In this document: one piece after another, positions 13,145 through 60,792 of the stretch
Position numbering within the stretch: position 1 is the first letter of the stretch
How the letters are laid out: every line of letters starts with the position of its first letter
NCBI GenBank assembly: GCA_025594325.1
Contig: JANHCV010000015.1
Location: 124,001 to 188,000 of the forward strand
Direction: 5' to 3'
Source: Blastocladiella emersonii ATCC 22665
Taxonomy: Eukaryota; Fungi; Blastocladiomycota
Length of the DNA: 64,000 nt
Notes under the pieces: generated by a model
What the model saw: the letters and a program-made list of their open reading frames with translations, nothing else
Database searches by the model: none
What the model was told of the DNA's origin: nothing
Translations under genes and position numbers: made by a program

Positions 13145-14503
13145 TTACGAGCGCTTGGGGCCGGCCGACGCGCGGCGCGAAGCGTTCTGCTGCTGCGACA
13201 TCTGCTGGCCCTGGGCCGACTGCTTGCGGGCCTGCTGCTGGTTCGACTGCTGCTGCTGCTGAGCCTGAGCCTGCATCGACGGCTTGCGAGCGGCCTGCTG
13301 CTGCTGAGGAGCGGCCGACTGCGCGCGAGCCGCCGCGGCCTGGTTCTGCTGCTGCGCCTGATGCGGCGACTGAGCGCGCTGCTGCTGCTGCTGCGCCATC
13401 TGGTTCTGGTTCTGCTGCTGCATCGACTGCTTGCGGGAGGCCTGGGGCATCTGCGCCTGCTGCGCCTGAGCCGACTGGGCGCGCTGGGCCTGGGCCTGCT
13501 GCTGCTGCTGCGCGGCGGGCGCCTTCTTCATCGTGAGCTGGTTGTACGCCTGCTCGTACTGCTGCTGCGACATGCGGCGCGGGGCCTGCGCCTGCTGCTG
13601 CTGCTGGTTCGCGGCCGACGACGCCTGCTGCTGCTTATGCTGGGGCGACTGGGCGCGGGCCTGCTGCTGCTGCTGCATCATCTGCTTGGCCTGGGCCTGC
13701 TGCGCCTGCTGCATCTGCATCTGGAGCTGCATCTGCTGCTGGGTCATGCCCTGCTGCTGCTGCTTCTGCTGGGGCGACTGGGCGCGAGCGTTCTGCTGCT
13801 GCGCCTGCATCTGCACCGGCTGGGCCTGGGCCTGGGCCGACTGGGCGCGGGCCATCATCTGCGGCGCCTGCTGCTGCTTGGCCTGGAGTTGCGGCGACTG
13901 CGCGCGCACAGCGGCAGCTGCGTTCTGCTGCTGGTTCTGCATCTGCTGCATCGGCTGGGCCTCGGCCGACTGCTTGCGCGCCTGAGCCTGCTGCATCTGC
14001 TGGGGCTGCGCCGCCGACTGGGCGCGCTGCATCGACTGCTGCTGCTGCTTGGGCAGCTGGTTGGCCATCCACTGCGGGACGCGGGCCTCGTCGAACATCC
14101 ACGCGCCCGACAGGAACGCGTCGTCGGGGTGCTCGCGGACGGGCGTCGCGCGGTACACCTGCGCGGCGGCGGCGGCGGCCTGGTTCTGCTTCTGCTGCAT
14201 CGGCATCTGCTTGTCCTGGTTCTGGGCGGCCTGGGCCTTCTGCTGCTGCTGCTGCTGCTTGAGCTGGGCCGACTGCGGGCGGGCAGCGGCGGCCGCGGCC
14301 TGGTTCTGCTGGCCCTGCATCGACTGCTTGCGGGCCTGGTTGTTCTGCTGGCCCTGCTGGTTCTGCTGCTGCTTGGCCTGCTGCTGCTGCTGCTTCTGGG
14401 CCTGAGTCTGCTGCTGCATCATGTTCTTGGGGTTGGCGGCCTGAGCCTGCTGCTGCTGCTCGACGGCCTGGCGCTGGGCGGAGGTGATCTGCGTGCGACC
14501 CAT
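13145..14503 (-). CDS. Gln-rich low-complexity protein with 16 RxxS motifs, long variant (452 aa)
   Basis: Intronless ORF with strong CAG/GCC bias and a TATA-like element near 14600. One aromatic island: VYRATPVREHPDDAFLSGAWMFDEARVPQW. Confidence 0.85.
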   Translation of the reverse strand: MGRTQITSAQRQAVEQQQQAQAANPKNMMQQQTQAQKQQQQQAKQQQNQQGQQNNQARKQSMQGQQNQAAAAAARPQSAQLKQQQQQQKAQAAQNQDKQMPMQQKQNQAAAAAAQVYRATPVREHPDDAFLSGAWMFDEARVPQWMANQLPKQQQQSMQRAQSAAQPQQMQQAQARKQSAEAQPMQQMQNQQQNAAAAVRAQSPQLQAKQQQAPQMMARAQSAQAQAQPVQMQAQQQNARAQSPQQKQQQQGMTQQQMQLQMQMQQAQQAQAKQMMQQQQQARAQSPQHKQQQASSAANQQQQQAQAPRRMSQQQYEQAYNQLTMKKAPAAQQQQQAQAQRAQSAQAQQAQMPQASRKQSMQQQNQNQMAQQQQQRAQSPHQAQQQNQAAAARAQSAAPQQQQAARKPSMQAQAQQQQQSNQQQARKQSAQGQQMSQQQNASRRASAGPKRS

Positions 14504-14762
14504 GTTGAAAGAGAGAGGTGCTTAAGGGGAGGAGGTAGGATACAAGTGGTAGAACTCGATGTCGGAACAGCGTGGTGAGAGCGAGGGGACGCCCGAGCTT
14601 TATACGCTCGCCCCCGCTCGCTCGCGCCCGTGTGCCGGGCGGTGCACTCGCTCACTCGGTGCGCTGCCAGACTGTTGCGATGCACGGTGCGAGACAGGAC
14701 GACAAGCCGGCCGACTGACTGGCAGAGGCTTGGGAGGGAGAATGCTGCTGGAGACACGGAAA

Positions 14763-14820
14763 TGAAACGCGACGCGACTGGCCACGTGAGGCCAGCCCAA
14801 TCACGGGCGAGTGTCTCGCG
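14763..14820. promoter_or_regulatory. Cis-module: TGAAACGCGACGCG + CACGTG E-box + CCAAT + GTGTCTC, in the divergent promoter of the Q-rich and 4-TM genes
   Basis: tgaaacgcgacgcgactggccacgtgaggccagcccaatcacgggcgagtgtctc; a near-identical module lies at 47905-47980 on the minus strand. Confidence 0.6.
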
Positions 14821-15306
14821 GGCTGCCTCGCACGCCGTACCGCGTTCAACCGACACCGCTTTCCCTAACGCTCGAGCTTTAGAGCACCGAGCGGAGCACA
14901 TCGGAGGACAGCATGCAGAGAGCCCGCGTCCCACGCTCAAACCTTACGGTCCTCGGCACGAGCGCCGCCTCCGCCTCGCGACCAACCCTCTTACGCTGAA
15001 CTTCACTTCGGTCACGATGGCACACGTCAGGACGAACGCAACAATGAGAATGTATGAACTGAAACGTGAGTCGATCCCTGACCCGGACGCAAAGTGCGCC
15101 TGGAAGCGCACTCGGCCTCACCTCGTGGCGGCCGACCAATGGGCGAGCGAGGCCCAAGCGGTGCATATCCCGTGGCATCGGCACCCTCGATTGATTCTGC
15201 TTCCGGGCCGCCGCCACAGCTTCTTCTCCCCTTCTGCGCTCGCTCCCATGCCCAGCCGGCGGTTCAAGTCGTACACGCACCGTATCAAACCGCAACGCAG
15301 ACCACC

Positions 15307-16047
15307 ATGGCCGGCACCGTCCTGCATGGTACCATGACATCGAAGCCGCTGCCCAAGGAGAACCGCTCGTGCGCGGGCAAGCTCGGCTACCTCCTCGAGC
15401 ACCTCCTCATGTGGCTGGTCGGCATGCCGACCATGATCTTCATGTTCCTCCACGCGCTGGCGTGTGCCGGGCTCGGGCTGTTCATGATCTTCCTCGCACG
15501 TACGCCCTGACGACGAACCCGAAGACCCGCTACGGCGCGATCACTGAATCCGCTCGCCATGTATCATGCAGAGTCGACGACGCGCGCCGTGGACCGGCTC
15601 ACGTTCGGGCAGGCCGAGAAGCAGAATCCGGACAGCTCGTTCACGCGGGCCATGGAGAACGTCAAGTTCAGCGGCGCCGTGGTCCTGTCGGGCGTCCTTG
15701 CCGACGTGCTCGCGTACCTTTCGCTCGGCGGCGCGCGGAACCGGATCGTGTGGGCGGTACGTCGTTCCTGCTTGAGTCTCGGGCACCAGCAACACTGACA
15801 TACGCGTCCGTCCGCATCGTGACAGATCATGTGTGTCCTCGCGATCGGGATCCAAGGCTTCCGCGTGTACTGGCTGCGCGAGCGCGAAAAGTACGAGCGC
15901 ACGACGGCCGAGTGGGACTCGAGCTCCGAAACGGCGGCCACCGTCACGATCACGGCCGAGTTCATCGACCTTGGCTGCGTCGTGGTCGCGGCGATCGCCG
16001 GCTACTTTGCGCGCAAGGCGGACGAGACCGCAGCGATGCCAGTGTAA
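15307..16047 (+). CDS. Four-TM membrane protein of unknown function (exons 15307-15499, 15572-15756, 15826-16047; 199 aa)
   Basis: Two canonical gtacg..ctga(c)..cag introns give an open frame with four hydrophobic helices and high GC3. Confidence 0.8.
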
Positions 16048-16999
16048 CTGAAGCGAGTCGTGGAAGAATAGAAGTGGTTGCGAGGCTTTGCGTTGCACAA
16101 AACGCTCTACTCGCGACCCTGCGAGGCGGTTATCTGGCGCTCCCCTCGAGATCATGTTGCAACTGACGACGTTTCTGTGTAGCAGCTTCGAGCTGACTGA
16201 CTAGAAGCGAGAGGATTGAGCAGGGCGAGCCTGTCGAGCGCGGCGTGGACGACGGGAGCGGGAGGAGTTCAAATCTGCTTAGGGCAACGACGCCATTACA
16301 TTACTCAAACCGAGAAGGGTCACGATCTGTCAGCGGCTGCCTCGAAGCGCAAAAGGGCGGCAACCGCTGCCTTGCGGCACCAACAAACTCGCGAACCGCA
16401 GCGTGCGGACTCCATCTCCAAGGACGGATTGACGCTCTCGGAACGACCGAAGCGGGCGAGACGCTCGGTCTGATCGCTAACCCGGGACGCGCTGCGCCAC
16501 CCACGTGCGGCGTGCAGCAACGTGTCTTCAGCCGCGCCTTTGCCGTTGGCCTCCCTTGTTCTCGGCCGCGGCCATCAGGCATTCCATGAATCCCGCTCTA
16601 ACATGGCGCAACGCTCGACACCATGCATCATCATAACGATTCCAGGTTTACTTGGCGAACGGCGGCGTGCGTGCCGCCTGGCCTGCTGCGAACGCATCCC
16701 GCGTGAGCCCGCTGGCCGCGTCTGAGGGAGACGATCCGCATGCGCCTGTACGTGAAGGATCTAGGCTGGTATGCTTGCCCTAACGCGATCGTGACCTGGT
16801 TCCCGGCCAACTTGCTCAACCGACGAAAAGGGTTGCTGTAGCTCAAGAACGGGGGCTGGGTTCCTGCCGAGTAGAGCATGATGTCGAGGCGTCTATGCGC
16901 GACGGCATGCACCACAGCGAGTGCTTTTATAGGGCGGACCGAGTACGTGCTCAAAGCCTGCGCTCCTCGCCGTCTCACGCTCACGCTGAAGGACTAGAC

Positions 17000-18301
17000 G
17001 TGGCTCGGCGTGGGTCTCGACAAGTGTACGCCCTTCGGCTCGTCTCCTCTGGAGCGTGGACTCGTCGTCCGAGCCGCTCAGCGGTCGTCGCGATACCGAC
17101 GAGATCGGCGGCTCCGTTTCGCCGAGCGAGGTACGTTCGCGCGCCGTGGAGCCCAAAGGATGGGTGAACCAGCTGACATCGTCGCGATCGCTACGTGTAT
17201 GGCCAACAGGGCACCCTGCCTCGGACTCAAAACGGGCGTGCGAGCTCGGGGCGGTCGGGATCCAGTGGCAGTAGACTGCCCGCGCAGTACGATGGGCTGA
17301 CTTGAATTGCTGGACCGACATTTCGCGCTAACTGTACCACCCCTCGAGTAGCGCTGTTCGGCCTCGGCGTAAGCGTATCGAGGAGATTGCGGGTTCGGAT
17401 TCTACAAGAAGGAGCGTTGACGATGGCCGCGCCCCCACGTCACCGTACGAGCTCGTACGGATGACAACCACCTCTTGGCGCTGCTCACTCACACGGCCGC
17501 TTCGCGTAGATCTTCCGCACCGGAGAGCCCGCCAACAAGTCAAGGTTCCTCGCCGCCTTCATCATCGAGTGCCGTCGCACCATGGCCATCGCGACCAAGG
17601 ACGATCGAGTACGAGTACAGGTACGCATTTTCGGCGGCTAGCAGCATCAACCAGCTGAGCTGACACCAATCCCTGCGCAGCGCCGCGCACGACCATTTCC
17701 CGAGCACAGCACGTGCCGTCAAGGTTGGCAAGTCGCCGTGGCTCGTCAAGCTCCACGCCTGTTCTGGCGCGCGAGCTGTGTGACGGCCGCCAAGGTGACG
17801 ACGCGGGATCAAGGGTACGGATCCGCTCACGCTCGGTTCTGCATGGACCGCGGCTCACTCAATCGATACGGACGATGCAGCTCGCGACCTCAATTGCGTA
17901 GTCGTCGGCATTCTGGACGGTGACGCGCTTCCACTCAAAACGGACAAGGTCAAGACCAACGACGTGACGTGCGTACGCCTTTGCGATCTCGGCACCGTGG
18001 CTTCCGTGGAGGCCGGGACTGGCGACACGAGACGCGGGATGCTGACGCTTTGCGCTGCGCCGTGCTGCACTTCTAGGCCAAGATCCACCACCGGCATCCG
18101 CCGTGTCGTGCGGGCCGAGGCCACGACGACTCGGCGGTGCCTGCTCCGCTTCGAGCTCAAGTTTGAGAGCGCCAACATTCCCAACCCTCAACTCAAACCG
18201 CTGCGGGACGGCATCGGTACGGCCCTGCGTCATGTTCAGCTGCCGCTCTCGTTCACGGCTCATTCTCTTGTTACTCACGTCCGTGTGTAGCACCAACTTG
18301 A
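17000..18301 (+). pseudogene. Decayed multi-intron gene not visible in the ORF track
   Basis: Seven intron-like segments: 17131-17209, 17287-17351, 17455-17509, 17621-17680, 17815-17880, 17969-18076, 18217-18290. Exon phases are mostly consistent (PYELIFRTGEPANKSRFLAAF, RDLNCVVVGILDGD, RCLLRFELKFESANIP). Repair needs about one frameshift, and two TGA stops remain. Confidence 0.45.
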
Positions 18302-18726
18302 CAGCTGCAGTCGCACTACTTGCCACGCGCAACGCCACCACGGGTTTGAGCGCGTAACGTTCTGGGACCGTACTGCGTTGGAGAGTTCGCCGAGCTGCAG
18401 CCCGGTGCCCCGCTCGCCGCCAAACGACGCGTTCGTGCCGTGGACTCGCAGGGCGCCACGGTGGCGGCATCGCGCGGTGGTCGTGGCCGTAGCAGTCCGT
18501 TGCCGTTGCTAGACAGCGGCAATACCGCTGAGTATGTGCGCAACGAGGTCGTTGAGCAGCTGAACGGTTACGACGGCCGAGCGCGTGTCAGCTATGTTGC
18601 CCTGATCCTTCTCATGAGCTGCGACTGTGGCGCAGCGCCAGGTAGGCTTCATCAGGTGAGTGGCGCAGCACGTCCACGTTGGGCGTGTCCCCGCTGCTCC
18701 TGACCTTGCATTCCACCCATCACCTC

Positions 18727-19689
18727 TCAACTGTTCCTACCGTACCTCAAACCCGGCGACTGGGGACCAAGTCGCGCCGAGGAAGAGAGCAGGGTGAAAG
18801 AAAGGGGAGCTTTTTGCGCAGTGACCAACATTCCGACTGGGAGCGAGTGGACCATGGGTACAGGCTGGGCACAGGTGAAGTTGGGGACAAACTGGCAAGC
18901 GACACGGCAGAGCGTTGAGGGACAAAGACCCGGCACGTTGAGCAGCAGGCATTGATGGGCGGGGTGGTGAGGGAGACGATGATGTTGGACAAGAGTCAGG
19001 GGCGGCGGCCCTTGGACAGCGAGCAGCGGAGCCGTGGTTGCGTCAAGTGCGGCTGTTAGAGCTGGAACGCCGACGTGGAGAGCTGCGCCTGAAGTCGAGC
19101 GCGAGGAAAAAGGGTCAGCTCGTAGTTCAGTACAGCGAACGGAGCGGTAAGAGCGTGCCGAGTGGCGCTGGGTCTCGCCGACTTTGGACATACCGTCAGC
19201 CAGCGAATCCGGCGACGAGCCGCTGCCGCTGCCCTGCTCGGCCGACATGAAAATAACCTGGGACGACTTGCCAGGTCCGCGCGTAGCCTCCTTGGTCGGC
19301 ACCTTGAGCTGGGGGGCCGACGCGGCTGCATCGATGGTGCTACAAAGGACAACGAGTCAGCGTGCTGGATGTCAAAGGCGCCGAAATGACGCCATGTCCC
19401 CGCAGGGCCCGAGGCGCGCCTCCAGCTGTCCAGTCAGCGTAGTCGCCCGCTCTTCCGCAAACATGAGCTTGTTGGTGAGGCTGGTGTTGGTTGCGGCGGC
19501 CTTCTCCTCGCTGACGACGGCGTTGACGGTGACGGCGATGAGCATGCGCCAGGCCTCGTCCGAGTAGCCCGCGGGGGCGCAGTCAAGACTGACGCTGTCG
19601 CCGTTGGGGACGGGAGGCAGGCGCGCCGCCTCGGCGACCTTGGCGAGCTTGGTCCAGGCGCGCGGGATGAGGTCGGCCGGGACGTACAT
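18727..19689 (-). CDS. Orphan spliced gene (probably 3 exons) starting MYVPADLIPRAWTKLAKV
   Basis: High-GC3 first exon. The second intron is canonical (gtatgt..gctgac..cag) and keeps the frame. The first intron has a good acceptor but a weak donor (gtcatt). Confidence 0.45.
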
Positions 19690-20858
19690 GGCGGGCAATG
19701 CGTGGTGCACTGAGTACAAAGGGGACGAGGATGATTGAGAGCGAGGAAGACGGCGCAGGCGAGGGCGCGCGCGCGGGCGAGGTCAGGTGCGCGGTGAAGC
19801 AAGCAGACCACGCAAGGGCAAGGCGCGAGGCGATCTCGCGGGGAAGCACCGTCTTGACTTGTGTCACAAGGCCGAGGTGGCCTCAGGGCGTGACGCGCTG
19901 GCTAAACCGCACGCGCGCGGTTGTCACACCGCTGCCAACCGACGCGCCAAAAGTCGTTCCCTGCCATCGCCAATAGCGATAAGCCCGCGCTGTTTCTGCC
20001 GGTCGTCGCAGAGGCTTTGAGAGCGAGAACAACCGCGCGGGCCCTGGTCGCGGCGGGGATCCGGTTTGCATGAAGTTGCATTGAAGCTTCGAGACAATAC
20101 TCTGCACACGCATACGCACACGCACCCCGCGCTGCGCCCTCGTCAGCAGCCGCACTTGCACACACAGCACCGCCGCCGCTCAAACGCATCCGCGACGGCC
20201 CACGCAGGCGGCAGCAGCGGCGGTCCTTCGACCCGCTCGACGAGTTGAGTGGGGTGCAAGGCCTCGTTCGCGCGTGCTGCTGCGGCCGGACGTCAGTCGG
20301 GCCGTCGCGGCTAGGGAAGGCGGTCGGGGGTCGGGGCTCGGAGGTTCGGTGCAACATCACACAAGTCGGCTCGCGGGGACCCACAAGCGAGGCCTCGGTC
20401 TGCCCAGCTTCTCGTTGCATGCACTCGTAAAGAATGCAGGAGTGGTTATGTTCGAAACTGTGCCGGTCGGGGCCCTTGGCGGGCGGCAGCGGGCGCCGAC
20501 AGGCAGGCCGACAGGCAGCCTGACAGGGGAGGAGCAATCTGGGAGCCCGCGTCACGTGGAACTCACTTGATGTCTCGCACTGTCTCGCGCATCATCATCG
20601 GCGCCAGCAAGCCTCCGGCACCCCGATGCCGCGGAAAAGTTCATGCCGCCTGGCCACAACGGGTGGGCTCCGCGGCGACCTACAAAGGCCCTCCTGCCCC
20701 CGTCCCCGCCCCCGCTCACCCCTCAACATCGCTCCAACGGCCGATTCACACCGCCATCTCCTTTAGTATGTGTAAGCCTATTGTTCACGAGTTTGCTAAC
20801 GCTACCTTGTCTCTTCGCGCGCTCCTGTAGTCCGCTTCTCAGCAACCATCCTGCGCAC

Positions 20859-21374
20859 ATGCTTTCAACTACGCTGTCCGAGTTCAGCAAGCCGCACGAC
20901 TCTGCGCGTCCTCTGCGTAGAGTGCGTCACGCGCCGATGCAGCTCGAGGCCGTCGAGCGGCTTGAATCACTCGTGCTTGTCAAGTCGGCCGACCTGTCCA
21001 AGCTCACCAACTTATCGCGCAGGCTCGCTCAGTGCGCGCAGTCCAACAACGAGCCAACCTGTATTCCAACTGTAGACGCTCACGGCGGTTTTACCACTCT
21101 TGTTGGAGTGCTTGAGTCCCTGCTCCCAGCTCTCCTTGCTGTGGACACACACGCAATTCGTCCCAAGACGGTCGAATTCTCTATCCACACACGGAATCGC
21201 GACGACAAGAAGGTCATGGCCGTGGCGAAGGAAATTCTCGATGAACACAACAACCGCGAATTGATGTACCGCCAGAGAATGGCGGAATTCGACAAGGAGT
21301 TGGCTGACATTGAGGCGCGCTACGCTCGGATGCGGCAATCGATTTTCGGCTCTTGCCTCGTCATCGCGAACTAA
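20859..21374 (+). CDS. Orphan family member A (171 aa; N-terminal shared domain plus C-terminal coiled coil)
   Basis: Shares ARPLRxVRxAP..ESLVxVKSxDLxKLT..LExxLPALLAVDT with B. 5'-UTR intron 20766-20830 (gtatgt..gctaac..tag). AT-rich tract after the stop. Confidence 0.7.
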   Translation: MLSTTLSEFSKPHDSARPLRRVRHAPMQLEAVERLESLVLVKSADLSKLTNLSRRLAQCAQSNNEPTCIPTVDAHGGFTTLVGVLESLLPALLAVDTHAIRPKTVEFSIHTRNRDDKKVMAVAKEILDEHNNRELMYRQRMAEFDKELADIEARYARMRQSIFGSCLVIAN

Positions 21375-21756
21375 AAGTATTATATATTTCCCTTATACCC
21401 TTGGATATCCCTGCGTTTATCTCCCGCAACTCCTTCCTACAATATCTAAAACATCGCTTCTTTGTTGCTCTGTTGCTGAGGTCGTCCTTGCGCCCCCATA
21501 ATTCAATGTGGAAAGCGAGCTCCGTCGTAGCCTAGCGATAGGAGGTCAGTTTATTACTCTGTCACTTTTCGGCACTGCGCTCGGCCCACAACGACCTGTA
21601 CAACGACATATTCGTCGCCTTTCTCGACCCGCACATGTCGTCCTTGTGTGCGGAAGCTGGGGCCAACCTTGCCGCTGCCGCGAGAACTGAACATTCGCTC
21701 AATTCACAGTTAACGTTCATCGAATCTCAGACTACTTGGCTCACGACTCCGGGGAT

Positions 21757-21848
21757 GTGTTTGAACCGGAACAAATGCAATCAGATCAGTGATGGAACCA
21801 CTGATGCGCAAAGCGTTGCGCCACACCCGTGTCGGTGTCGCGAGACCC
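21757..21848 (+). repeat. ~92-bp element with two dyads, copy 1 (copy 2 at 23464-23555; partial core at 22277-22292)
   Basis: gtgtttgaaccggaa..atcagtgatggaaccactgatgcgcaaagcgttgcgccacac..gtcggtg vs gtgcttgaaccggaa..atcagtgatggagcgactgatgcgcgacgcgttgcgccacac..gtcggtg. Confidence 0.75.
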
Positions 21849-22735
21849 AAATACTCTTCCTGATGCGCGAGAGTGTACTGACGACTGGAAATCGTCAAAA
21901 AATGCGTTCCGTGCGGGCATGCGCCAGTGCGCGAGCTCCCGCGAGGAGCCTGATCGGTGCACCTTGGTAGTTGAAATCCATTCTAGCGATTGGGATCGAG
22001 TGCTTCTACAATGCCTGTCCACGCGGGCGTGAAAGGTGCGCGTGTACGATGAATAGGTACGACTCGGGATCAAGACGCTGAGATCAGTGAACTTGTCGCT
22101 CAAACCGATAACGAGTATGAATCGTCGCATCGGGATCCACCACCAACTACCGTCGCAAAGCCTTAACGTTCACCCGATCCCGGTGGTAAAACACCATCTC
22201 CGGGGTGGAATCAGATTCTTAGGAGCAAGCGCTGTACGAAAGAAGCCCGGAGGGATGAAATGCAAGACGGCACGAGACGCGTTGCGCCACACACGTGTCA
22301 TAGCCCACACGCGTCCGCCGTGGTCCCATTCTCCCGGTTCAGACGTTCGGGCATACTCCCGCCTCACGAAAAATTGTTGGATATCGGTGCGCAACTTCCA
22401 AACCCTCGCTGAAACGAAATGCGGGTGTGATCCTCTCACAGGCATAACTGCGATGAACACAGACTGACGAATATCGAGGCCTGCTGCAGCTATCCAACCA
22501 TCTCCACATTTCAAGCTCCTTTACCATTAACCTAAATATATGCTGCAGTTGCGCTTCGAGCAAGCCGCTCAAGATTCTGCCACGTGTGTTGCGCGAACTC
22601 CTCAATAGATACATTCTCCCCGGTTGGCGCGGAACTCTCGCAAGCGCCGTGAGCTGCCAAGTTCCGCTCTTGGTGCTACTACCTTCACGGCACAAAACCG
22701 GCATTCAGCACCGAAATCTCAACAAAGAGCCCCGA

Positions 22736-23242
22736 ATGATGCACGCTTCCCCGGGAGATAACAAAGCCCACGGCTTCGCGCGCCCTCTCCGAAATGTGCG
22801 TCCCGCCCCGGCACAGCCCAAGGTTGCTGTGAAATCCGAGTCGCTCGTATGCGTCAAGTCGGGCGATCTGTTCAAGCTGACCGCCATCGCACGCAAGCTC
22901 ACACCGTACGCGTTGGGTGGTACCGAGACGGAACCGGTACCTACTTCTGTCTCGGTTAGCGAGTTTCCTCAGCTAGTCGACACGCTCGAAACGATGCTTC
23001 CGGCACTGCTGGCCGTGGACACGCAAGTGGTTGCCTTGGCAGCAGCCAAAGCACGCCGCAAGGCCGAACACGCCCGGGTCAAAGCTGCGAAGCGGAAGGC
23101 GTTCTTTGACCAGCACCGGAAGCAAATGGAGGAATTTCACCAACAGATGCAGGAGATGAAGAAGAAACTGGCCGCCGTGGAGGCCTATTTCGGTATTACA
23201 ACCCGTCCGCTTCGCAAAGAATTGATGGTCCCTGTGACTTGA
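22736..23242 (+). CDS. Orphan family member B (168 aa; shared domain plus coiled coil)
   Basis: KAHGFARPLRNVRPAP..ESLVCVKSGDLFKLT..LVDTLETMLPALLAVDT; heptad-like tail QHRKQMEEFHQQMQEMKKKLAAVE. Confidence 0.7.
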   Translation: MMHASPGDNKAHGFARPLRNVRPAPAQPKVAVKSESLVCVKSGDLFKLTAIARKLTPYALGGTETEPVPTSVSVSEFPQLVDTLETMLPALLAVDTQVVALAAAKARRKAEHARVKAAKRKAFFDQHRKQMEEFHQQMQEMKKKLAAVEAYFGITTRPLRKELMVPVT

Positions 23243-23463
23243 TTTGCCCAAAAACGCCGCTGTCACTATGCAATACCCCCCAAATCTCGCTCAATACACT
23301 GGAGTATCTCTCTCGAGCTGGTCCAATGACAACGAAAGCTTTGGCAAGAGTAAGTCAGAGAATCCAGCACCGCACATGGCTTCCGGAATTGAGCTCAACC
23401 ATTAGTGCTGCGAAACCCGTCAAACGCGCGACCATGGACGCGCCGCGCCCCCCACGTTTCTCG

Positions 23464-23555
23464 GTGCTTGAACCGGAAGAGGCCCGCGCGGATCAGTGAT
23501 GGAGCGACTGATGCGCGACGCGTTGCGCCACACTCTTGTCGGTGCAGCGAGAACC
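23464..23555 (+). repeat. ~92-bp double-dyad element, copy 2, about 150 bp upstream of member C
   Basis: Aligns to 21757-21848. Confidence 0.75.
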
Positions 23556-23707
23556 TGACGCGCCGCTCGGTGCGCGGAAAGTTATTCCCACCTGACGCAT
23601 ATGATCGAGTGCGCATACTCTGTGCGGCGAGCCTTAGCCCGCGGACTTGGTGGCGCAAACGTGGACTTGGCTCGCTCTCCCACTTGTGCAAGCCAAGATA
23701 TTCTCAC

Positions 23708-47859: not shown

Positions 47860-47904
47860 GAGAGGAAAGCGCGCGGCCAGGTGGCGCGGGGCGCGCGCGA
47901 ACGG

Positions 47905-50517: not shown

Positions 50518-50982
50518 GTGAGAATATCTTGGCTTGCACAAGTGGGAGAGCGAGCCAAGTCCACGTTTGCGCCACCAAGTCCGCGGGCTAAGGCTCGCCG
50601 CACAGAGTATGCGCACTCGATCATATGCGTCAGGTGGGAATAACTTTCCGCGCACCGAGCGGCGCGTCAGGTTCTCGCTGCACCGACAAGAGTGTGGCGC
50701 AACGCGTCGCGCATCAGTCGCTCCATCACTGATCCGCGCGGGCCTCTTCCGGTTCAAGCACCGAGAAACGTGGGGGGCGCGGCGCGTCCATGGTCGCGCG
50801 TTTGACGGGTTTCGCAGCACTAATGGTTGAGCTCAATTCCGGAAGCCATGTGCGGTGCTGGATTCTCTGACTTACTCTTGCCAAAGCTTTCGTTGTCATT
50901 GGACCAGCTCGAGAGAGATACTCCAGTGTATTGAGCGAGATTTGGGGGGTATTGCATAGTGACAGCGGCGTTTTTGGGCAAA

Positions 50983-51489
50983 TCAAGTCACAGGGACCAT
51001 CAATTCTTTGCGAAGCGGACGGGTTGTAATACCGAAATAGGCCTCCACGGCGGCCAGTTTCTTCTTCATCTCCTGCATCTGTTGGTGAAATTCCTCCATT
51101 TGCTTCCGGTGCTGGTCAAAGAACGCCTTCCGCTTCGCAGCTTTGACCCGGGCGTGTTCGGCCTTGCGGCGTGCTTTGGCTGCTGCCAAGGCAACCACTT
51201 GCGTGTCCACGGCCAGCAGTGCCGGAAGCATCGTTTCGAGCGTGTCGACTAGCTGAGGAAACTCGCTAACCGAGACAGAAGTAGGTACCGGTTCCGTCTC
51301 GGTACCACCCAACGCGTACGGTGTGAGCTTGCGTGCGATGGCGGTCAGCTTGAACAGATCGCCCGACTTGACGCATACGAGCGACTCGGATTTCACAGCA
51401 ACCTTGGGCTGTGCCGGGGCGGGACGCACATTTCGGAGAGGGCGCGCGAAGCCGTGGGCTTTGTTATCTCCCGGGGAAGCGTGCATCAT
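50983..51489 (-). CDS. Orphan family member B, mirror copy
   Basis: Identical translation to 22736-23242. Confidence 0.7.
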   Translation of the reverse strand: MMHASPGDNKAHGFARPLRNVRPAPAQPKVAVKSESLVCVKSGDLFKLTAIARKLTPYALGGTETEPVPTSVSVSEFPQLVDTLETMLPALLAVDTQVVALAAAKARRKAEHARVKAAKRKAFFDQHRKQMEEFHQQMQEMKKKLAAVEAYFGITTRPLRKELMVPVT

Positions 51490-52850
51490 TCGGGGCTCTT
51501 TGTTGAGATTTCGGTGCTGAATGCCGGTTTTGTGCCGTGAAGGTAGTAGCACCAAGAGCGGAACTTGGCAGCTCACGGCGCTTGCGAGAGTTCCGCGCCA
51601 ACCGGGGAGAATGTATCTATTGAGGAGTTCGCGCAACACACGTGGCAGAATCTTGAGCGGCTTGCTCGAAGCGCAACTGCAGCATATATTTAGGTTAATG
51701 GTAAAGGAGCTTGAAATGTGGAGATGGTTGGATAGCTGCAGCAGGCCTCGATATTCGTCAGTCTGTGTTCATCGCAGTTATGCCTGTGAGAGGATCACAC
51801 CCGCATTTCGTTTCAGCGAGGGTTTGGAAGTTGCGCACCGATATCCAACAATTTTTCGTGAGGCGGGAGTATGCCCGAACGTCTGAACCGGGAGAATGGG
51901 ACCACGGCGGACGCGTGTGGGCTATGACACGTGTGTGGCGCAACGCGTCTCGTGCCGTCTTGCATTTCATCCCTCCGGGCTTCTTTCGTACAGCGCTTGC
52001 TCCTAAGAATCTGATTCCACCCCGGAGATGGTGTTTTACCACCGGGATCGGGTGAACGTTAAGGCTTTGCGACGGTAGTTGGTGGTGGATCCCGATGCGA
52101 CGATTCATACTCGTTATCGGTTTGAGCGACAAGTTCACTGATCTCAGCGTCTTGATCCCGAGTCGTACCTATTCATCGTACACGCGCACCTTTCACGCCC
52201 GCGTGGACAGGCATTGTAGAAGCACTCGATCCCAATCGCTAGAATGGATTTCAACTACCAAGGTGCACCGATCAGGCTCCTCGCGGGAGCTCGCGCACTG
52301 GCGCATGCCCGCACGGAACGCATTTTTTGACGATTTCCAGTCGTCAGTACACTCTCGCGCATCAGGAAGAGTATTTGGGTCTCGCGACACCGACACGGGT
52401 GTGGCGCAACGCTTTGCGCATCAGTGGTTCCATCACTGATCTGATTGCATTTGTTCCGGTTCAAACACATCCCCGGAGTCGTGAGCCAAGTAGTCTGAGA
52501 TTCGATGAACGTTAACTGTGAATTGAGCGAATGTTCAGTTCTCGCGGCAGCGGCAAGGTTGGCCCCAGCTTCCGCACACAAGGACGACATGTGCGGGTCG
52601 AGAAAGGCGACGAATATGTCGTTGTACAGGTCGTTGTGGGCCGAGCGCAGTGCCGAAAAGTGACAGAGTAATAAACTGACCTCCTATCGCTAGGCTACGA
52701 CGGAGCTCGCTTTCCACATTGAATTATGGGGGCGCAAGGACGACCTCAGCAACAGAGCAACAAAGAAGCGATGTTTTAGATATTGTAGGAAGGAGTTGCG
52801 GGAGATAAACGCAGGGATATCCAAGGGTATAAGGGAAATATATAATACTT

Positions 52851-53366
52851 TTAGTTCGCGATGACGAGGCAAGAGCCGAAAATCGATTGCCGCATCCGAG
52901 CGTAGCGCGCCTCAATGTCAGCCAACTCCTTGTCGAATTCCGCCATTCTCTGGCGGTACATCAATTCGCGGTTGTTGTGTTCATCGAGAATTTCCTTCGC
53001 CACGGCCATGACCTTCTTGTCGTCGCGATTCCGTGTGTGGATAGAGAATTCGACCGTCTTGGGACGAATTGCGTGTGTGTCCACAGCAAGGAGAGCTGGG
53101 AGCAGGGACTCAAGCACTCCAACAAGAGTGGTAAAACCGCCGTGAGCGTCTACAGTTGGAATACAGGTTGGCTCGTTGTTGGACTGCGCGCACTGAGCGA
53201 GCCTGCGCGATAAGTTGGTGAGCTTGGACAGGTCGGCCGACTTGACAAGCACGAGTGATTCAAGCCGCTCGACGGCCTCGAGCTGCATCGGCGCGTGACG
53301 CACTCTACGCAGAGGACGCGCAGAGTCGTGCGGCTTGCTGAACTCGGACAGCGTAGTTGAAAGCAT
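52851..53366 (-). CDS. Orphan family member A, mirror copy
   Basis: Identical translation to 20859-21374. Confidence 0.7.
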   Translation of the reverse strand: MLSTTLSEFSKPHDSARPLRRVRHAPMQLEAVERLESLVLVKSADLSKLTNLSRRLAQCAQSNNEPTCIPTVDAHGGFTTLVGVLESLLPALLAVDTHAIRPKTVEFSIHTRNRDDKKVMAVAKEILDEHNNRELMYRQRMAEFDKELADIEARYARMRQSIFGSCLVIAN

Positions 53367-54535
53367 GTGCGCAGGATGGTTGCTGAGAAGCGGACTACAG
53401 GAGCGCGCGAAGAGACAAGGTAGCGTTAGCAAACTCGTGAACAATAGGCTTACACATACTAAAGGAGATGGCGGTGTGAATCGGCCGTTGGAGCGATGTT
53501 GAGGGGTGAGCGGGGGCGGGGACGGGGGCAGGAGGGCCTTTGTAGGTCGCCGCGGAGCCCACCCGTTGTGGCCAGGCGGCATGAACTTTTCCGCGGCATC
53601 GGGGTGCCGGAGGCTTGCTGGCGCCGATGATGATGCGCGAGACAGTGCGAGACATCAAGTGAGTTCCACGTGACGCGGGCTCCCAGATTGCTCCTCCCCT
53701 GTCAGGCTGCCTGTCGGCCTGCCTGTCGGCGCCCGCTGCCGCCCGCCAAGGGCCCCGACCGGCACAGTTTCGAACATAACCACTCCTGCATTCTTTACGA
53801 GTGCATGCAACGAGAAGCTGGGCAGACCGAGGCCTCGCTTGTGGGTCCCCGCGAGCCGACTTGTGTGATGTTGCACCGAACCTCCGAGCCCCGACCCCCG
53901 ACCGCCTTCCCTAGCCGCGACGGCCCGACTGACGTCCGGCCGCAGCAGCACGCGCGAACGAGGCCTTGCACCCCACTCAACTCGTCGAGCGGGTCGAAGG
54001 ACCGCCGCTGCTGCCGCCTGCGTGGGCCGTCGCGGATGCGTTTGAGCGGCGGCGGTGCTGTGTGTGCAAGTGCGGCTGCTGACGAGGGCGCAGCGCGGGG
54101 TGCGTGTGCGTATGCGTGTGCAGAGTATTGTCTCGAAGCTTCAATGCAACTTCATGCAAACCGGATCCCCGCCGCGACCAGGGCCCGCGCGGTTGTTCTC
54201 GCTCTCAAAGCCTCTGCGACGACCGGCAGAAACAGCGCGGGCTTATCGCTATTGGCGATGGCAGGGAACGACTTTTGGCGCGTCGGTTGGCAGCGGTGTG
54301 ACAACCGCGCGCGTGCGGTTTAGCCAGCGCGTCACGCCCTGAGGCCACCTCGGCCTTGTGACACAAGTCAAGACGGTGCTTCCCCGCGAGATCGCCTCGC
54401 GCCTTGCCCTTGCGTGGTCTGCTTGCTTCACCGCGCACCTGACCTCGCCCGCGCGCGCGCCCTCGCCTGCGCCGTCTTCCTCGCTCTCAATCATCCTCGT
54501 CCCCTTTGTACTCAGTGCACCACGCATTGCCCGCC

Positions 54536-55498
54536 ATGTACGTCCCGGCCGACCTCATCCCGCGCGCCTGGACCAAGCTCGCCAAGGTCGCCGAGGCGGC
54601 GCGCCTGCCTCCCGTCCCCAACGGCGACAGCGTCAGTCTTGACTGCGCCCCCGCGGGCTACTCGGACGAGGCCTGGCGCATGCTCATCGCCGTCACCGTC
54701 AACGCCGTCGTCAGCGAGGAGAAGGCCGCCGCAACCAACACCAGCCTCACCAACAAGCTCATGTTTGCGGAAGAGCGGGCGACTACGCTGACTGGACAGC
54801 TGGAGGCGCGCCTCGGGCCCTGCGGGGACATGGCGTCATTTCGGCGCCTTTGACATCCAGCACGCTGACTCGTTGTCCTTTGTAGCACCATCGATGCAGC
54901 CGCGTCGGCCCCCCAGCTCAAGGTGCCGACCAAGGAGGCTACGCGCGGACCTGGCAAGTCGTCCCAGGTTATTTTCATGTCGGCCGAGCAGGGCAGCGGC
55001 AGCGGCTCGTCGCCGGATTCGCTGGCTGACGGTATGTCCAAAGTCGGCGAGACCCAGCGCCACTCGGCACGCTCTTACCGCTCCGTTCGCTGTACTGAAC
55101 TACGAGCTGACCCTTTTTCCTCGCGCTCGACTTCAGGCGCAGCTCTCCACGTCGGCGTTCCAGCTCTAACAGCCGCACTTGACGCAACCACGGCTCCGCT
55201 GCTCGCTGTCCAAGGGCCGCCGCCCCTGACTCTTGTCCAACATCATCGTCTCCCTCACCACCCCGCCCATCAATGCCTGCTGCTCAACGTGCCGGGTCTT
55301 TGTCCCTCAACGCTCTGCCGTGTCGCTTGCCAGTTTGTCCCCAACTTCACCTGTGCCCAGCCTGTACCCATGGTCCACTCGCTCCCAGTCGGAATGTTGG
55401 TCACTGCGCAAAAAGCTCCCCTTTCTTTCACCCTGCTCTCTTCCTCGGCGCGACTTGGTCCCCAGTCGCCGGGTTTGAGGTACGGTAGGAACAGTTGA
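54536..55498 (+). CDS. Orphan spliced gene, mirror copy
   Basis: Mirror of 18727-19689. Confidence 0.45.
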
Positions 55499-55923
55499 GA
55501 GGTGATGGGTGGAATGCAAGGTCAGGAGCAGCGGGGACACGCCCAACGTGGACGTGCTGCGCCACTCACCTGATGAAGCCTACCTGGCGCTGCGCCACAG
55601 TCGCAGCTCATGAGAAGGATCAGGGCAACATAGCTGACACGCGCTCGGCCGTCGTAACCGTTCAGCTGCTCAACGACCTCGTTGCGCACATACTCAGCGG
55701 TATTGCCGCTGTCTAGCAACGGCAACGGACTGCTACGGCCACGACCACCGCGCGATGCCGCCACCGTGGCGCCCTGCGAGTCCACGGCACGAACGCGTCG
55801 TTTGGCGGCGAGCGGGGCACCGGGCTGCAGCTCGGCGAACTCTCCAACGCAGTACGGTCCCAGAACGTTACGCGCTCAAACCCGTGGTGGCGTTGCGCGT
55901 GGCAAGTAGTGCGACTGCAGCTG

Positions 55924-57225
55924 TCAAGTTGGTGCTACACACGGACGTGAGTAACAAGAGAATGAGCCGTGAACGAGAGCGGCAGCTGAACATGACGCAG
56001 GGCCGTACCGATGCCGTCCCGCAGCGGTTTGAGTTGAGGGTTGGGAATGTTGGCGCTCTCAAACTTGAGCTCGAAGCGGAGCAGGCACCGCCGAGTCGTC
56101 GTGGCCTCGGCCCGCACGACACGGCGGATGCCGGTGGTGGATCTTGGCCTAGAAGTGCAGCACGGCGCAGCGCAAAGCGTCAGCATCCCGCGTCTCGTGT
56201 CGCCAGTCCCGGCCTCCACGGAAGCCACGGTGCCGAGATCGCAAAGGCGTACGCACGTCACGTCGTTGGTCTTGACCTTGTCCGTTTTGAGTGGAAGCGC
56301 GTCACCGTCCAGAATGCCGACGACTACGCAATTGAGGTCGCGAGCTGCATCGTCCGTATCGATTGAGTGAGCCGCGGTCCATGCAGAACCGAGCGTGAGC
56401 GGATCCGTACCCTTGATCCCGCGTCGTCACCTTGGCGGCCGTCACACAGCTCGCGCGCCAGAACAGGCGTGGAGCTTGACGAGCCACGGCGACTTGCCAA
56501 CCTTGACGGCACGTGCTGTGCTCGGGAAATGGTCGTGCGCGGCGCTGCGCAGGGATTGGTGTCAGCTCAGCTGGTTGATGCTGCTAGCCGCCGAAAATGC
56601 GTACCTGTACTCGTACTCGATCGTCCTTGGTCGCGATGGCCATGGTGCGACGGCACTCGATGATGAAGGCGGCGAGGAACCTTGACTTGTTGGCGGGCTC
56701 TCCGGTGCGGAAGATCTACGCGAAGCGGCCGTGTGAGTGAGCAGCGCCAAGAGGTGGTTGTCATCCGTACGAGCTCGTACGGTGACGTGGGGGCGCGGCC
56801 ATCGTCAACGCTCCTTCTTGTAGAATCCGAACCCGCAATCTCCTCGATACGCTTACGCCGAGGCCGAACAGCGCTACTCGAGGGGTGGTACAGTTAGCGC
56901 GAAATGTCGGTCCAGCAATTCAAGTCAGCCCATCGTACTGCGCGGGCAGTCTACTGCCACTGGATCCCGACCGCCCCGAGCTCGCACGCCCGTTTTGAGT
57001 CCGAGGCAGGGTGCCCTGTTGGCCATACACGTAGCGATCGCGACGATGTCAGCTGGTTCACCCATCCTTTGGGCTCCACGGCGCGCGAACGTACCTCGCT
57101 CGGCGAAACGGAGCCGCCGATCTCGTCGGTATCGCGACGACCGCTGAGCGGCTCGGACGACGAGTCCACGCTCCAGAGGAGACGAGCCGAAGGGCGTACA
57201 CTTGTCGAGACCCACGCCGAGCCAC
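55924..57225 (-). pseudogene. Decayed multi-intron gene, mirror copy
   Basis: Mirror of 17000-18301. Confidence 0.45.
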
Positions 57226-58177
57226 GTCTAGTCCTTCAGCGTGAGCGTGAGACGGCGAGGAGCGCAGGCTTTGAGCACGTACTCGGTCCGCCCTATAAAA
57301 GCACTCGCTGTGGTGCATGCCGTCGCGCATAGACGCCTCGACATCATGCTCTACTCGGCAGGAACCCAGCCCCCGTTCTTGAGCTACAGCAACCCTTTTC
57401 GTCGGTTGAGCAAGTTGGCCGGGAACCAGGTCACGATCGCGTTAGGGCAAGCATACCAGCCTAGATCCTTCACGTACAGGCGCATGCGGATCGTCTCCCT
57501 CAGACGCGGCCAGCGGGCTCACGCGGGATGCGTTCGCAGCAGGCCAGGCGGCACGCACGCCGCCGTTCGCCAAGTAAACCTGGAATCGTTATGATGATGC
57601 ATGGTGTCGAGCGTTGCGCCATGTTAGAGCGGGATTCATGGAATGCCTGATGGCCGCGGCCGAGAACAAGGGAGGCCAACGGCAAAGGCGCGGCTGAAGA
57701 CACGTTGCTGCACGCCGCACGTGGGTGGCGCAGCGCGTCCCGGGTTAGCGATCAGACCGAGCGTCTCGCCCGCTTCGGTCGTTCCGAGAGCGTCAATCCG
57801 TCCTTGGAGATGGAGTCCGCACGCTGCGGTTCGCGAGTTTGTTGGTGCCGCAAGGCAGCGGTTGCCGCCCTTTTGCGCTTCGAGGCAGCCGCTGACAGAT
57901 CGTGACCCTTCTCGGTTTGAGTAATGTAATGGCGTCGTTGCCCTAAGCAGATTTGAACTCCTCCCGCTCCCGTCGTCCACGCCGCGCTCGACAGGCTCGC
58001 CCTGCTCAATCCTCTCGCTTCTAGTCAGTCAGCTCGAAGCTGCTACACAGAAACGTCGTCAGTTGCAACATGATCTCGAGGGGAGCGCCAGATAACCGCC
58101 TCGCAGGGTCGCGAGTAGAGCGTTTTGTGCAACGCAAAGCCTCGCAACCACTTCTATTCTTCCACGACTCGCTTCAG

Positions 58178-58918
58178 TTACACTGGCATCGCTGCGGTCT
58201 CGTCCGCCTTGCGCGCAAAGTAGCCGGCGATCGCCGCGACCACGACGCAGCCAAGGTCGATGAACTCGGCCGTGATCGTGACGGTGGCCGCCGTTTCGGA
58301 GCTCGAGTCCCACTCGGCCGTCGTGCGCTCGTACTTTTCGCGCTCGCGCAGCCAGTACACGCGGAAGCCTTGGATCCCGATCGCGAGGACACACATGATC
58401 TGTCACGATGCGGACGGACGCGTATGTCAGTGTTGCTGGTGCCCGAGACTCAAGCAGGAACGACGTACCGCCCACACGATCCGGTTCCGCGCGCCGCCGA
58501 GCGAAAGGTACGCGAGCACGTCGGCAAGGACGCCCGACAGGACCACGGCGCCGCTGAACTTGACGTTCTCCATGGCCCGCGTGAACGAGCTGTCCGGATT
58601 CTGCTTCTCGGCCTGCCCGAACGTGAGCCGGTCCACGGCGCGCGTCGTCGACTCTGCATGATACATGGCGAGCGGATTCAGTGATCGCGCCGTAGCGGGT
58701 CTTCGGGTTCGTCGTCAGGGCGTACGTGCGAGGAAGATCATGAACAGCCCGAGCCCGGCACACGCCAGCGCGTGGAGGAACATGAAGATCATGGTCGGCA
58801 TGCCGACCAGCCACATGAGGAGGTGCTCGAGGAGGTAGCCGAGCTTGCCCGCGCACGAGCGGTTCTCCTTGGGCAGCGGCTTCGATGTCATGGTACCATG
58901 CAGGACGGTGCCGGCCAT
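58178..58918 (-). CDS. Four-TM membrane protein, mirror copy
   Basis: Mirror of 15307-16047. Confidence 0.8.
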
Positions 58919-59721
58919 GGTGGTCTGCGTTGCGGTTTGATACGGTGCGTGTACGACTTGAACCGCCGGCTGGGCATGGGAGCGAGCGCAGAAGGGGAGA
59001 AGAAGCTGTGGCGGCGGCCCGGAAGCAGAATCAATCGAGGGTGCCGATGCCACGGGATATGCACCGCTTGGGCCTCGCTCGCCCATTGGTCGGCCGCCAC
59101 GAGGTGAGGCCGAGTGCGCTTCCAGGCGCACTTTGCGTCCGGGTCAGGGATCGACTCACGTTTCAGTTCATACATTCTCATTGTTGCGTTCGTCCTGACG
59201 TGTGCCATCGTGACCGAAGTGAAGTTCAGCGTAAGAGGGTTGGTCGCGAGGCGGAGGCGGCGCTCGTGCCGAGGACCGTAAGGTTTGAGCGTGGGACGCG
59301 GGCTCTCTGCATGCTGTCCTCCGATGTGCTCCGCTCGGTGCTCTAAAGCTCGAGCGTTAGGGAAAGCGGTGTCGGTTGAACGCGGTACGGCGTGCGAGGC
59401 AGCCCGCGAGACACTCGCCCGTGATTGGGCTGGCCTCACGTGGCCAGTCGCGTCGCGTTTCATTTCCGTGTCTCCAGCAGCATTCTCCCTCCCAAGCCTC
59501 TGCCAGTCAGTCGGCCGGCTTGTCGTCCTGTCTCGCACCGTGCATCGCAACAGTCTGGCAGCGCACCGAGTGAGCGAGTGCACCGCCCGGCACACGGGCG
59601 CGAGCGAGCGGGGGCGAGCGTATAAAGCTCGGGCGTCCCCTCGCTCTCACCACGCTGTTCCGACATCGAGTTCTACCACTTGTATCCTACCTCCTCCCCT
59701 TAAGCACCTCTCTCTTTCAAC

Positions 59722-60792
59722 ATGGGTCGCACGCAGATCACCTCCGCCCAGCGCCAGGCCGTCGAGCAGCAGCAGCAGGCTCAGGCCGCCAACCCCAAGA
59801 ACATGATGCAGCAGCAGACTCAGGCCCAGAAGCAGCAGCAGCAGCAGGCCAAGCAGCAGCAGAACCAGCAGGGCCAGCAGAACAACCAGGCCCGCAAGCA
59901 GTCGATGCAGGGCCAGCAGAACCAGGCCGCGGCCGCCGCTGCCCGCCCGCAGTCGGCCCAGCTCAAGCAGCAGCAGCAGCAGCAGAAGGCCCAGGCCGCC
60001 CAGAACCAGGACAAGCAGATGCCGATGCAGCAGAAGCAGAACCAGGCCGCCGCCGCCGCCGCGCAGGTGTACCGCGCGACGCCCGTCCGCGAGCACCCCG
60101 ACGACGCGTTCCTGTCGGGCGCGTGGATGTTCGACGAGGCCCGCGTCCCGCAGTGGATGGCCAACCAGCTGCCCAAGCAGCAGCAGCAGTCGATGCAGCG
60201 CGCCCAGTCGGCGGCGCAGCCCCAGCAGATGCAGCAGGCTCAGGCGCGCAAGCAGTCGGCCGAGGCCCAGCCGATGCAGCAGATGCAGAACCAGCAGCAG
60301 AACGCAGCTGCCGCTGTGCGCGCGCAGTCGCCGCAACTCCAGGCCAAGCAGCAGCAGGCGCCGCAGATGATGGCCCGCGCCCAGTCGGCCCAGGCCCAGG
60401 CCCAGCCGGTGCAGATGCAGGCGCAGCAGCAGAACGCTCGCGCCCAGTCGCCCCAGCAGAAGCAGCAGCAGCAGGGCATGACCCAGCAGCAGATGCAGCT
60501 CCAGATGCAGATGCAGCAGGCGCAGCAGGCCCAGGCCAAGCAGATGATGCAGCAGCAGCAGCAGGCGCGCGCTCAGTCGGCTCAGGCCCAGCAGGCCCAG
60601 AAGCCCCAGGCCGCCCGCAAGCAGTCCATGCAGCAGCAGAGCCAGAACCAGATGGCCCAGCAGCAGCAGCAGCAGCAGCAGCGCGCTCAGTCGCCCCAGC
60701 AGCAGCAGAACCATGCCCGCAAGCAGTCGATGCAGGGCCAGCAGCAGCAGCAGAACGCTCGCCGCGCGTCGGCTGGCCCCAAGCGCTCGTAA
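59722..60792 (+). CDS. Gln-rich RxxS-repeat protein, short variant (356 aa)
   Basis: First ~281 codons are identical to 13145-14503. The C-terminal part differs and is shorter but ends in the same RRASAGPKRS. Confidence 0.85.
   Translation: MGRTQITSAQRQAVEQQQQAQAANPKNMMQQQTQAQKQQQQQAKQQQNQQGQQNNQARKQSMQGQQNQAAAAAARPQSAQLKQQQQQQKAQAAQNQDKQMPMQQKQNQAAAAAAQVYRATPVREHPDDAFLSGAWMFDEARVPQWMANQLPKQQQQSMQRAQSAAQPQQMQQAQARKQSAEAQPMQQMQNQQQNAAAAVRAQSPQLQAKQQQAPQMMARAQSAQAQAQPVQMQAQQQNARAQSPQQKQQQQGMTQQQMQLQMQMQQAQQAQAKQMMQQQQQARAQSAQAQQAQKPQAARKQSMQQQSQNQMAQQQQQQQQRAQSPQQQQNHARKQSMQGQQQQQNARRASAGPKRS

Follow-up and report, generated by a model that had tools for sequence, protein, structure and literature searches.

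Organisation of the palindrome

The stretch of DNA analysed here, referred to as the window, comprises 64,000 nucleotides (nt) of the genome of Blastocladiella emersonii ATCC 22665 (GCA_025594325.1) and contains a large palindrome, in which two arms of 12.3 kb lie in opposite orientation around a spacer of 22 kb. The palindrome is found at ~137.7-184.6 kb of the nuclear contig JANHCV010000015.1, which is 1.07 Mb long (1,068,026 bp), and more than 130 kb of contig separate the locus from the nearest contig end. All positions are those of the window, and the record coordinate is the window position plus 124,000. Direct comparison showed that 13659-25941 is the reverse complement of 48284-60566 with 0/12,283 bp mismatched. 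The arm coordinates have a constant sum of 74225 and enclose a spacer of 22,342 bp at 25942-48283. A blastn search gave a single high-scoring segment pair, 13646-26068 with 60579-48163, at 99.8% identity, and all 17 of its mismatches and all 5 of its gaps fall outside the perfect core. A match of this length cannot be due to chance. The preliminary description of this DNA, made from the letters alone, had reported two identical, opposite arms of 12,283 bp with a coordinate sum of 74225, and both the letter-by-letter comparison and blastn bear this out.

The main features are listed below; Gln-rich and PAQR refer to the genes at the outer and inner ends of the arms, and GC3 is the GC content at third codon positions.

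Arm A: 13659..25941, 12,283 bp; 0 mismatches to arm B when the latter is reverse-complemented; depth ~2x in each of three libraries
Arm B: 48284..60566, 12,283 bp; same identity; its junction with the right end of the spacer is carried by an independent contig of sequencing run X3
Spacer: 25942..48283, 22,342 bp; single copy, 1x depth; host-like GC3 of 0.9-0.97
Outer diverged margin, copy A: 13085..13658, minus strand; covers the 3' part of the Gln-rich gene with ~60 nt downstream of the stop; ~85% identical to 60567-60855, with indels of repeat units
Outer diverged margin, copy B: 60567..60855, plus strand; homologous to the copy A margin
Inner diverged margin, copy A: 25942..26068, plus strand; last 4 codons of the PAQR gene, stop and 3' untranslated region (UTR); 85.5% identical to 48163-48283
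Inner diverged margin, copy B: 48163..48283, minus strand; every variant letter is present in record 13 of X3
Gln-rich gene, copy A: 13145..14503, minus strand; 452 amino acids (aa), an exact product in GCA_025594325.1; GC3 0.95; no Pfam match
Gln-rich gene, copy B: 59722..60792, plus strand; 356 aa; shorter, with a diverged C-terminus
PAQR / haemolysin-III gene, copy A: 24590..25956, plus strand; three exons with introns at ~25323-25402 and ~25721-25776; Pfam HlyIII in two frames
PAQR gene, copy B: 48272..49635, minus strand; protein P0001, 408 aa, H9P43_009571; full-length HlyIII

The annotation places four genes in each arm, namely the Gln-rich gene, one of 199 aa, a small gene called as 152 or 146 aa, and the PAQR gene. 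The two terminal genes run over the ends of the perfect tract. The first 282 aa of the Gln-rich protein lie within the arm and are identical in the two copies; the C-termini are homologous, with indels of repeat units and substitutions, and both copies end in ...ASAGPKRS followed by a stop. For the PAQR gene, copy A ends in ...SSSSSSGALP and copy B in ...SSSSSSAMP, again each followed by a stop. The P0001 protein matches PF03006 over positions 1-223 of 224 with 147.6 bits (cut-off 26.2) and an E value of 5.8e-43, so that the full-length, seven-pass HlyIII domain scores above the Pfam gathering threshold. Each of the terminal genes is intact in its A and B copies alike, and the pseudogenic DNA that had been proposed in the arms was not borne out by them.

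Diverged margins at both ends of the perfect tract

Homology outlasts the perfect tract at both ends of the arms at only ~85% identity and then stops. At the inner end, the perfect tract finishes directly after an (AGC)6 run at 25941, 4 codons before the PAQR stop, and copy A carries an extra GGC codon just past this position. The inner margin aligns over 124 nt with 15 mismatches and 3 gaps (85.5% identity), and similarity is gone after ~26060. At the outer end, the perfect tract finishes beside a (CTG)4 run at 13659, within the Gln-rich gene, and the margin extends for ~0.5 kb before the similarity fades ~60 nt beyond the stop of that gene. Thus both ends of the tract sit at triplet runs of the CTG/CAG type, in the 3' parts of the coding regions of the two terminal genes.

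In the margin of the Gln-rich gene, 74 aligned codons gave a synonymous divergence (dS) of 0.23 and a nonsynonymous divergence (dN) of 0.048, a ratio of 0.21. It follows that both copies are genes under constraint and that the duplication is an old one. Beyond the margins no homology of any kind was found, tblastx of the flanks against the spacer halves giving only compositional matches of no more than 35 bits. An older and larger duplication was rejected on the same comparison.

Both arms are present in the genome

The published assembly was built from PacBio HiFi reads (run SRR19593111) with a mean length of 10.5 kb at ~186x using the La Jolla Assembler (LJA), and was afterwards purged, manually refined and polished using Pilon with 65-nt Illumina reads (PMC9730499). 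Because the arm of 12.3 kb exceeds the mean read, the possibility of an artefact needed testing. Logan contigs of four DNA runs from the same sample, X1 to X4, were aligned on 23000-28999, a region crossing the inner boundary of arm A. Collapsed contigs of this kind cannot phase a 12-kb repeat, and the evidence comes from their depth and from the junctions that they carry.

In X1 the k-mer depth was 306.8 in the arm and 143.4 in the spacer (2.1x), with unrelated contigs touching the stretch at 123-144. In this run the arms were collapsed into one 11,416-nt contig, corresponding to window ~14527-25942 with zero differences and terminating at the boundary. Arm depths of 71.7 and 40.4 were found in X2 against 21.2 for the spacer (1.9-3.4x), where values above 2x in the part of low GC would fit the GC bias of old short-read chemistry. 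Depths in X3 were 8.8-12.5 in the arm and ~3-7 in the spacer, or about 2x. The branch point of the read graph falls exactly on the inner boundary.

The second inner junction was recovered from X3. Record 13 of this run extends from 23514 through the arm to 26060 and shows 14 differences from the copy A sequence, all at 25959-26028, each of the 14 variant letters being the letter of the arm B junction. The unmatched tail of the record (TCCGCACAGAGCAG...) corresponds to the DNA adjoining arm B at the right end of the spacer, and the 2.4 kb of arm sequence in the record is without any arm-specific variant. Both inner junctions are present in reads and therefore the arm occurs twice per genome. 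Furthermore, tblastx of the flanks against the spacer ends indicates that these are not allelic, and a haplotype fold-back is therefore excluded. The palindrome is a genuine chromosomal structure with two copies per genome. Two outcomes that would have undone the preliminary description, depth showing a single arm and inter-arm single nucleotide polymorphisms (SNPs) hidden by polishing, were thus not encountered: depth was ~2x over the arm in three libraries, and neither the X1 contig nor the X3 junction contig showed differences internal to the arm.

The ends of contigs in X3 and X4 bear a loxP-like linker (..ATACGAAGTTAT..) and look like Cre-lox paired-end genomic libraries. We take this to be the 454 paired-end linker, on which basis X3 and X4 would be a third, independent kind of DNA library. 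The mate pairs of these two runs could phase the orientation of the spacer.

Probable origin and homogenisation of the arms

The combination of a flawless core and diverged margins is very probably the result of an old inverted duplication whose core was re-homogenised very recently by recombination between the arms. That the duplication is old and the core recently homogenised follows from the abrupt passage, at both ends, into homologous DNA diverged by ~15% and then into unrelated DNA. Neutral divergence in the margins is ~0.13-0.23 per site, with 12% divergence at the inner margin and a dS of 0.23 at the outer. A divergence of 12% would place ~1,470 differences in the core, where 0 were observed, giving a 95% upper bound on core divergence of ~3/12,283, or 2.4e-4. 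The last homogenisation therefore falls within roughly the most recent 0.2% of the time since the duplication. An identity so far above that expected from the age of the duplication, with 85% in the margins against 0/12,283 differences in the core, is the mark of concerted evolution. Non-reciprocal homologous recombination is the sole ordinary process giving such identity, and we infer that gene conversion was its form. Arm-to-arm gene conversion is documented in Y and X palindromes (PMC3723533, PMC8600007, PMC8981503), and for inverted repeats in fungi the standard result is gene conversion or inversion by crossover (PMC6895784). The perfect core lying between margins of ~15% divergence therefore supports the suggestion that intrachromosomal gene conversion maintains the identity of the arms.

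The following course of events is proposed. A segment of ~13 kb, reaching from the 3' end of the Gln-rich gene to the 3' end of the PAQR gene and holding the four annotated genes and three unannotated orphan open reading frames (ORFs), would have been duplicated long ago, in inverted orientation, across a 22-kb block of housekeeping genes. Later, non-reciprocal homologous recombination, either gene conversion or long-tract break-induced copying, would have overwritten one arm with the other, the latest event being so recent that no difference has accumulated in 12,283 bp. The tract would halt at the (CTG)4 run on the outer side and at the (AGC)6 run on the inner side, beyond which indels and ~15% divergence probably prevent pairing. 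The edges would thereby escape correction and go on diverging. The position of the two ends suggests that the extension of heteroduplex is blocked by indel-prone triplet runs and the diverged sequence beyond them. The spacer may be inverted now and then by crossover in an unprogrammed manner.

Several points weigh against this interpretation or restrict it. The conversion is read from a pattern within one sample, the only one found to hold the sequence, and not from co-varying substitutions, and a lone, very recent replacement of a long tract looks the same as continuing frequent conversion, so that the two cannot be told apart. The GC content of the arm interior, 0.61 against 0.65-0.69 in the surroundings, is contrary to the effect expected of GC-biased conversion over a long time. 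Logan contigs lose rare variants and may pop bubbles, hence a very small number of inter-arm SNPs cannot be formally excluded. Finally, it is the inner junctions that the comparison with reads covered.

Alternative explanations

The palindrome might be a dosage amplicon under selection, in which two identical copies of the PAQR gene, the Gln-rich gene and the orphan family are advantageous, for example at one stage of the life cycle. This is compatible with a palindrome maintained by conversion and adds a functional claim to it. The intact state of the Gln-rich and PAQR genes in both copies is in its favour, as is the purifying selection on the diverged margin of the Gln-rich gene (dN/dS 0.21). 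However, most of the arm, 14.6-24.3 kb, is without the host coding signature and the three orphan ORFs are not gene-called, and we regard selection for dosage as unlikely.

A programmed invertible cassette, similar to the flip-flop mating-type loci of Ogataea and Komagataella and altering gene expression when it flips, is much less probable still. Long identical inverted repeats around a spacer do permit inversion by homologous recombination (PMC6895784). However, crossover between identical arms recreates all the junctions of arm with spacer and of arm with flank. Coding sequences and immediate gene neighbourhoods would therefore stay as they were, and inversion of the spacer would alter long-range order only. 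No mating-type, HMG, alpha-box, homeodomain or recombinase family was present among the arm, spacer-edge and flank ORFs scanned, the contents of the spacer are housekeeping genes, and the locus is more than 130 kb inside a contig of 1.07 Mb. More generally, the Pfam scans of arm, spacer and flank ORFs gave no recombinase, transposase, integrase, viral or mating-type domain, in agreement with the earlier remark that no recombinase or transposase is visible. A continuous LJA path through both arms needs reads spanning the arm and a predominant orientation. The path in this assembly is continuous through both arms, though its authors also refined it by hand, and this suggests a single predominant orientation. 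On general grounds, mitotic crossover is likely to invert the spacer occasionally. Nothing found here supports programmed switching. The proposal of an undescribed system, an invertible cassette or an amplicon linked to development or gametes likewise finds no support, with neither a recombinase nor a mating-type gene found and no gene changed by crossover.

Could the inverted duplication be brand new, without any older history, and have arisen by fold-back or template switching in the culture lineage? Zero differences across 12.3 kb would be expected in that case, and the triplet runs at the ends could provide microhomology for template switching. Against this, homologous sequence with 15% divergence runs on in register past both ends, and a new duplication cannot create a second Gln-rich C-terminus with its stop or a second PAQR stop and 3'UTR. 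Nor is the likeness of the margins a coincidence of low complexity where the non-repetitive inner 120 bp are concerned. A new duplication is accordingly very improbable.

An artefact of assembly, whether through false duplication of an inverted arm, through haplotypes joined as a fold-back or through identity made by polishing, is hardly credible in view of the read data and is already largely refuted. An arm longer than the mean HiFi read, in an assembly that was purged, manually refined and Pilon-polished (PMC9730499), would leave room for one. It is contradicted by the depth of ~2x in three separate libraries, by a graph that branches precisely on the boundary, by the presence of the second junction in an independent library and by flanks and spacer ends that are not allelic to each other, and an artefact would not generate diverged margins.

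Equally remote is a mobile element, an integrated virus bounded by long terminal inverted repeats, or a centromere whose inverted repeats are homogenised. A unique core between inverted repeats recalls such layouts, as does the atypical composition of the arm interior (GC 0.61, weak GC3). Against this, transposase, integrase, polymerase and capsid domains were all absent from the scanned ORFs, and in place of sharp termini with target-site duplications the ends pass into diverged homology. The depth is exactly 2x so that there are no further arm copies, and the core is dense with genes of host codon usage and not gene-free as in centromeres of the Candida tropicalis / S. pombe type.

Comparison with known palindromes and inverted repeats

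The old duplication with a converted core has close counterparts in the large palindromes of mammalian sex chromosomes, P1-P8 of the human Y and those of the X, which have gene-bearing arms of many kb, near-total identity and a unique spacer (PMC3723533, PMC8600007). The B. emersonii locus is of the same type, with arms of several kb, identity above 99% and a spacer that is not duplicated. In the Y and X palindromes identity is kept by arm-to-arm gene conversion and crossover inversions are rare (PMC3723533, PMC8600007). Unlike these, the B. emersonii locus is on an ordinary nuclear contig of ~1 Mb with housekeeping genes in its spacer, and its arms are GC-poorer than their surroundings, without a signature of GC-biased conversion. 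No sex chromosomes are known in this zoosporic fungus.

Among fungi, the long inverted repeats of Candida albicans and other species are similar in being nuclear substrates for mitotic homologous recombination. They mediate inversions, loss of heterozygosity and isochromosomes, conversion keeping the structure and crossover inverting the interval, and in C. albicans they are mostly shorter than 1 kb with a median of 785 bp (PMC6895784). The arms in B. emersonii differ in their length of 12.3 kb, their perfect identity and the division into old margins and a young core. The flip-flop loci of Ogataea polymorpha and Komagataella phaffii also consist of inverted repeats flanking an invertible interval. 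In contrast to these, no MAT genes were found at the present locus, there is no silencing neighbourhood of centromere or telomere, and no gene context is altered by inversion.

By itself the locus is a palindrome of the textbook type, kept identical by gene conversion, and not a new system. The genome paper contains no mention of palindromes or inverted repeats. The division between old margins and young core is clean, taking place within a few bases at coding triplet repeats, and provides a natural marker of the ends of conversion tracts. For users of the assembly, the genes of the arm exist twice, the annotation gives different products for the two members of one identical gene pair, and the orientation of the 22-kb spacer should be taken as provisional.

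It is possible, if doubtful, that the locus is one case of a genome-wide habit, with a dozen or more large, gene-bearing and perfectly homogenised palindromes on the ordinary chromosomes of B. emersonii, an early-diverging fungus without a known sexual cycle. If this were true, it would imply an unusually active route to inverted duplication together with very efficient intrachromosomal copy-correction. It would also mean an upkeep of genes like that of the Y chromosome across an asexual genome, with triplet repeats as barriers to conversion tracts.

Interior of the arms

Between the terminal genes, each arm holds two further annotated genes and three tandem ORFs, the orphan trio.

199-aa annotated gene: 15307..16047, plus strand; no Pfam family; mirror copy at 58178-58918, minus strand
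Small annotated gene: 19056..19689, minus strand; 152 aa in arm A; letter-identical copy at 54536-55169, plus strand, called as 146 aa
Orphan trio ORFs: 20859-21374, 22736-23242 and 23708-24271, plus strand; mirrors at 52851-53366, 50983-51489 and 49954-50517, minus strand

The products of 152 and 146 aa are called on letter-identical DNA and represent an inconsistency of annotation. For the 199-aa and 152-aa genes, exhaustive enumeration of introns gave hundreds to thousands of equally valid models.

The members of the orphan trio are ~170-190 aa long, share 28-37% pairwise identity and have a conserved core, RPLRxV...VKxxDLxxLT...LPALL. They are absent from the NCBI annotation, and their GC3 of ~0.65 compares with ~0.95 for typical genes here. 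An exact-product look-up of the first of them gave no record. A profile search of 1.8 billion representative proteins found a sole relative, an annotated B. emersonii protein of 266 aa on contig JANHCV010000005.1 (L004:10001-10801). Judged from these similarities, the trio is a real, species-specific family of paralogues. The locus of the 266-aa protein was considered as a third copy of the arm and rejected, the match being limited to the 46-aa core of the family. Coiled-coil leads for the trio from a feature search were generic, with scores of no more than 0.75, and were not used.

The arm interior, 14.6-24.3 kb, has a GC content of 0.61, falling to 0.52 at 21.0-21.5 kb, in a neighbourhood of 65-69%, and contains almost no ORF with the host GC3 of ~0.95. 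No mobile-element domain accounts for this atypical composition. Apart from HlyIII, Pfam gave no family over 23 arm ORFs, among them a further set of 10, and there was no match over 10 more ORFs from the flanks or the spacer. Scans for Rfam families and tRNA genes gave neither.

An element of 62 bp is found at 23491-23552 and at 21784-21845, upstream of the second and third trio members, the two copies being identical at 54/62 positions. Given the rise in read depth at this element, where numerous contigs also terminate, the genome may hold related copies at other loci.

Spacer, flanks and sequences around the PAQR gene

The spacer contains the following genes.

Ariadne-type RBR E3 ligase: 26597-28057, plus strand; Pfam
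Subtilase: 30986-31636, plus strand; Pfam
Proteasome subunit Rpn3: 34813-36240, plus strand; Pfam
Giant Ser/Thr-rich gene: 38356-46614, minus strand; gene call of 2,615 aa

The exact-product look-up of the Ariadne ORF gave no record. The 2,615-aa protein consists largely of tandem repeats rich in Ser, Thr and Asp, with periods of 24-198 nt, and has no Pfam family on record. In the left flank, Pfam identified PGK and pyruvate dehydrogenase E1-beta.

The search for homologues of the PAQR protein returned only the window's own cluster, one protein with 47% identity and the distant ascomycete Izh2, and no orthologous locus. The nearest relative outside the window's own cluster is at L003:950-1702, on a 12.8-kb Logan contig of SRR32590478, its 47% identity extending over part of the query. 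This locus was rejected as a syntenic counterpart, its neighbours being different (EXOSC1/Csl4, separase and CHORD).

Upstream of the PAQR gene there is a (GACGC)n run at 24430-24456, for which the k-mer depth in X1 was 535 against 307; the run is common to several unrelated contigs. It is followed at 24530-24579 by a perfect tandem repeat of two 24-bp units, in the likely 5'UTR.

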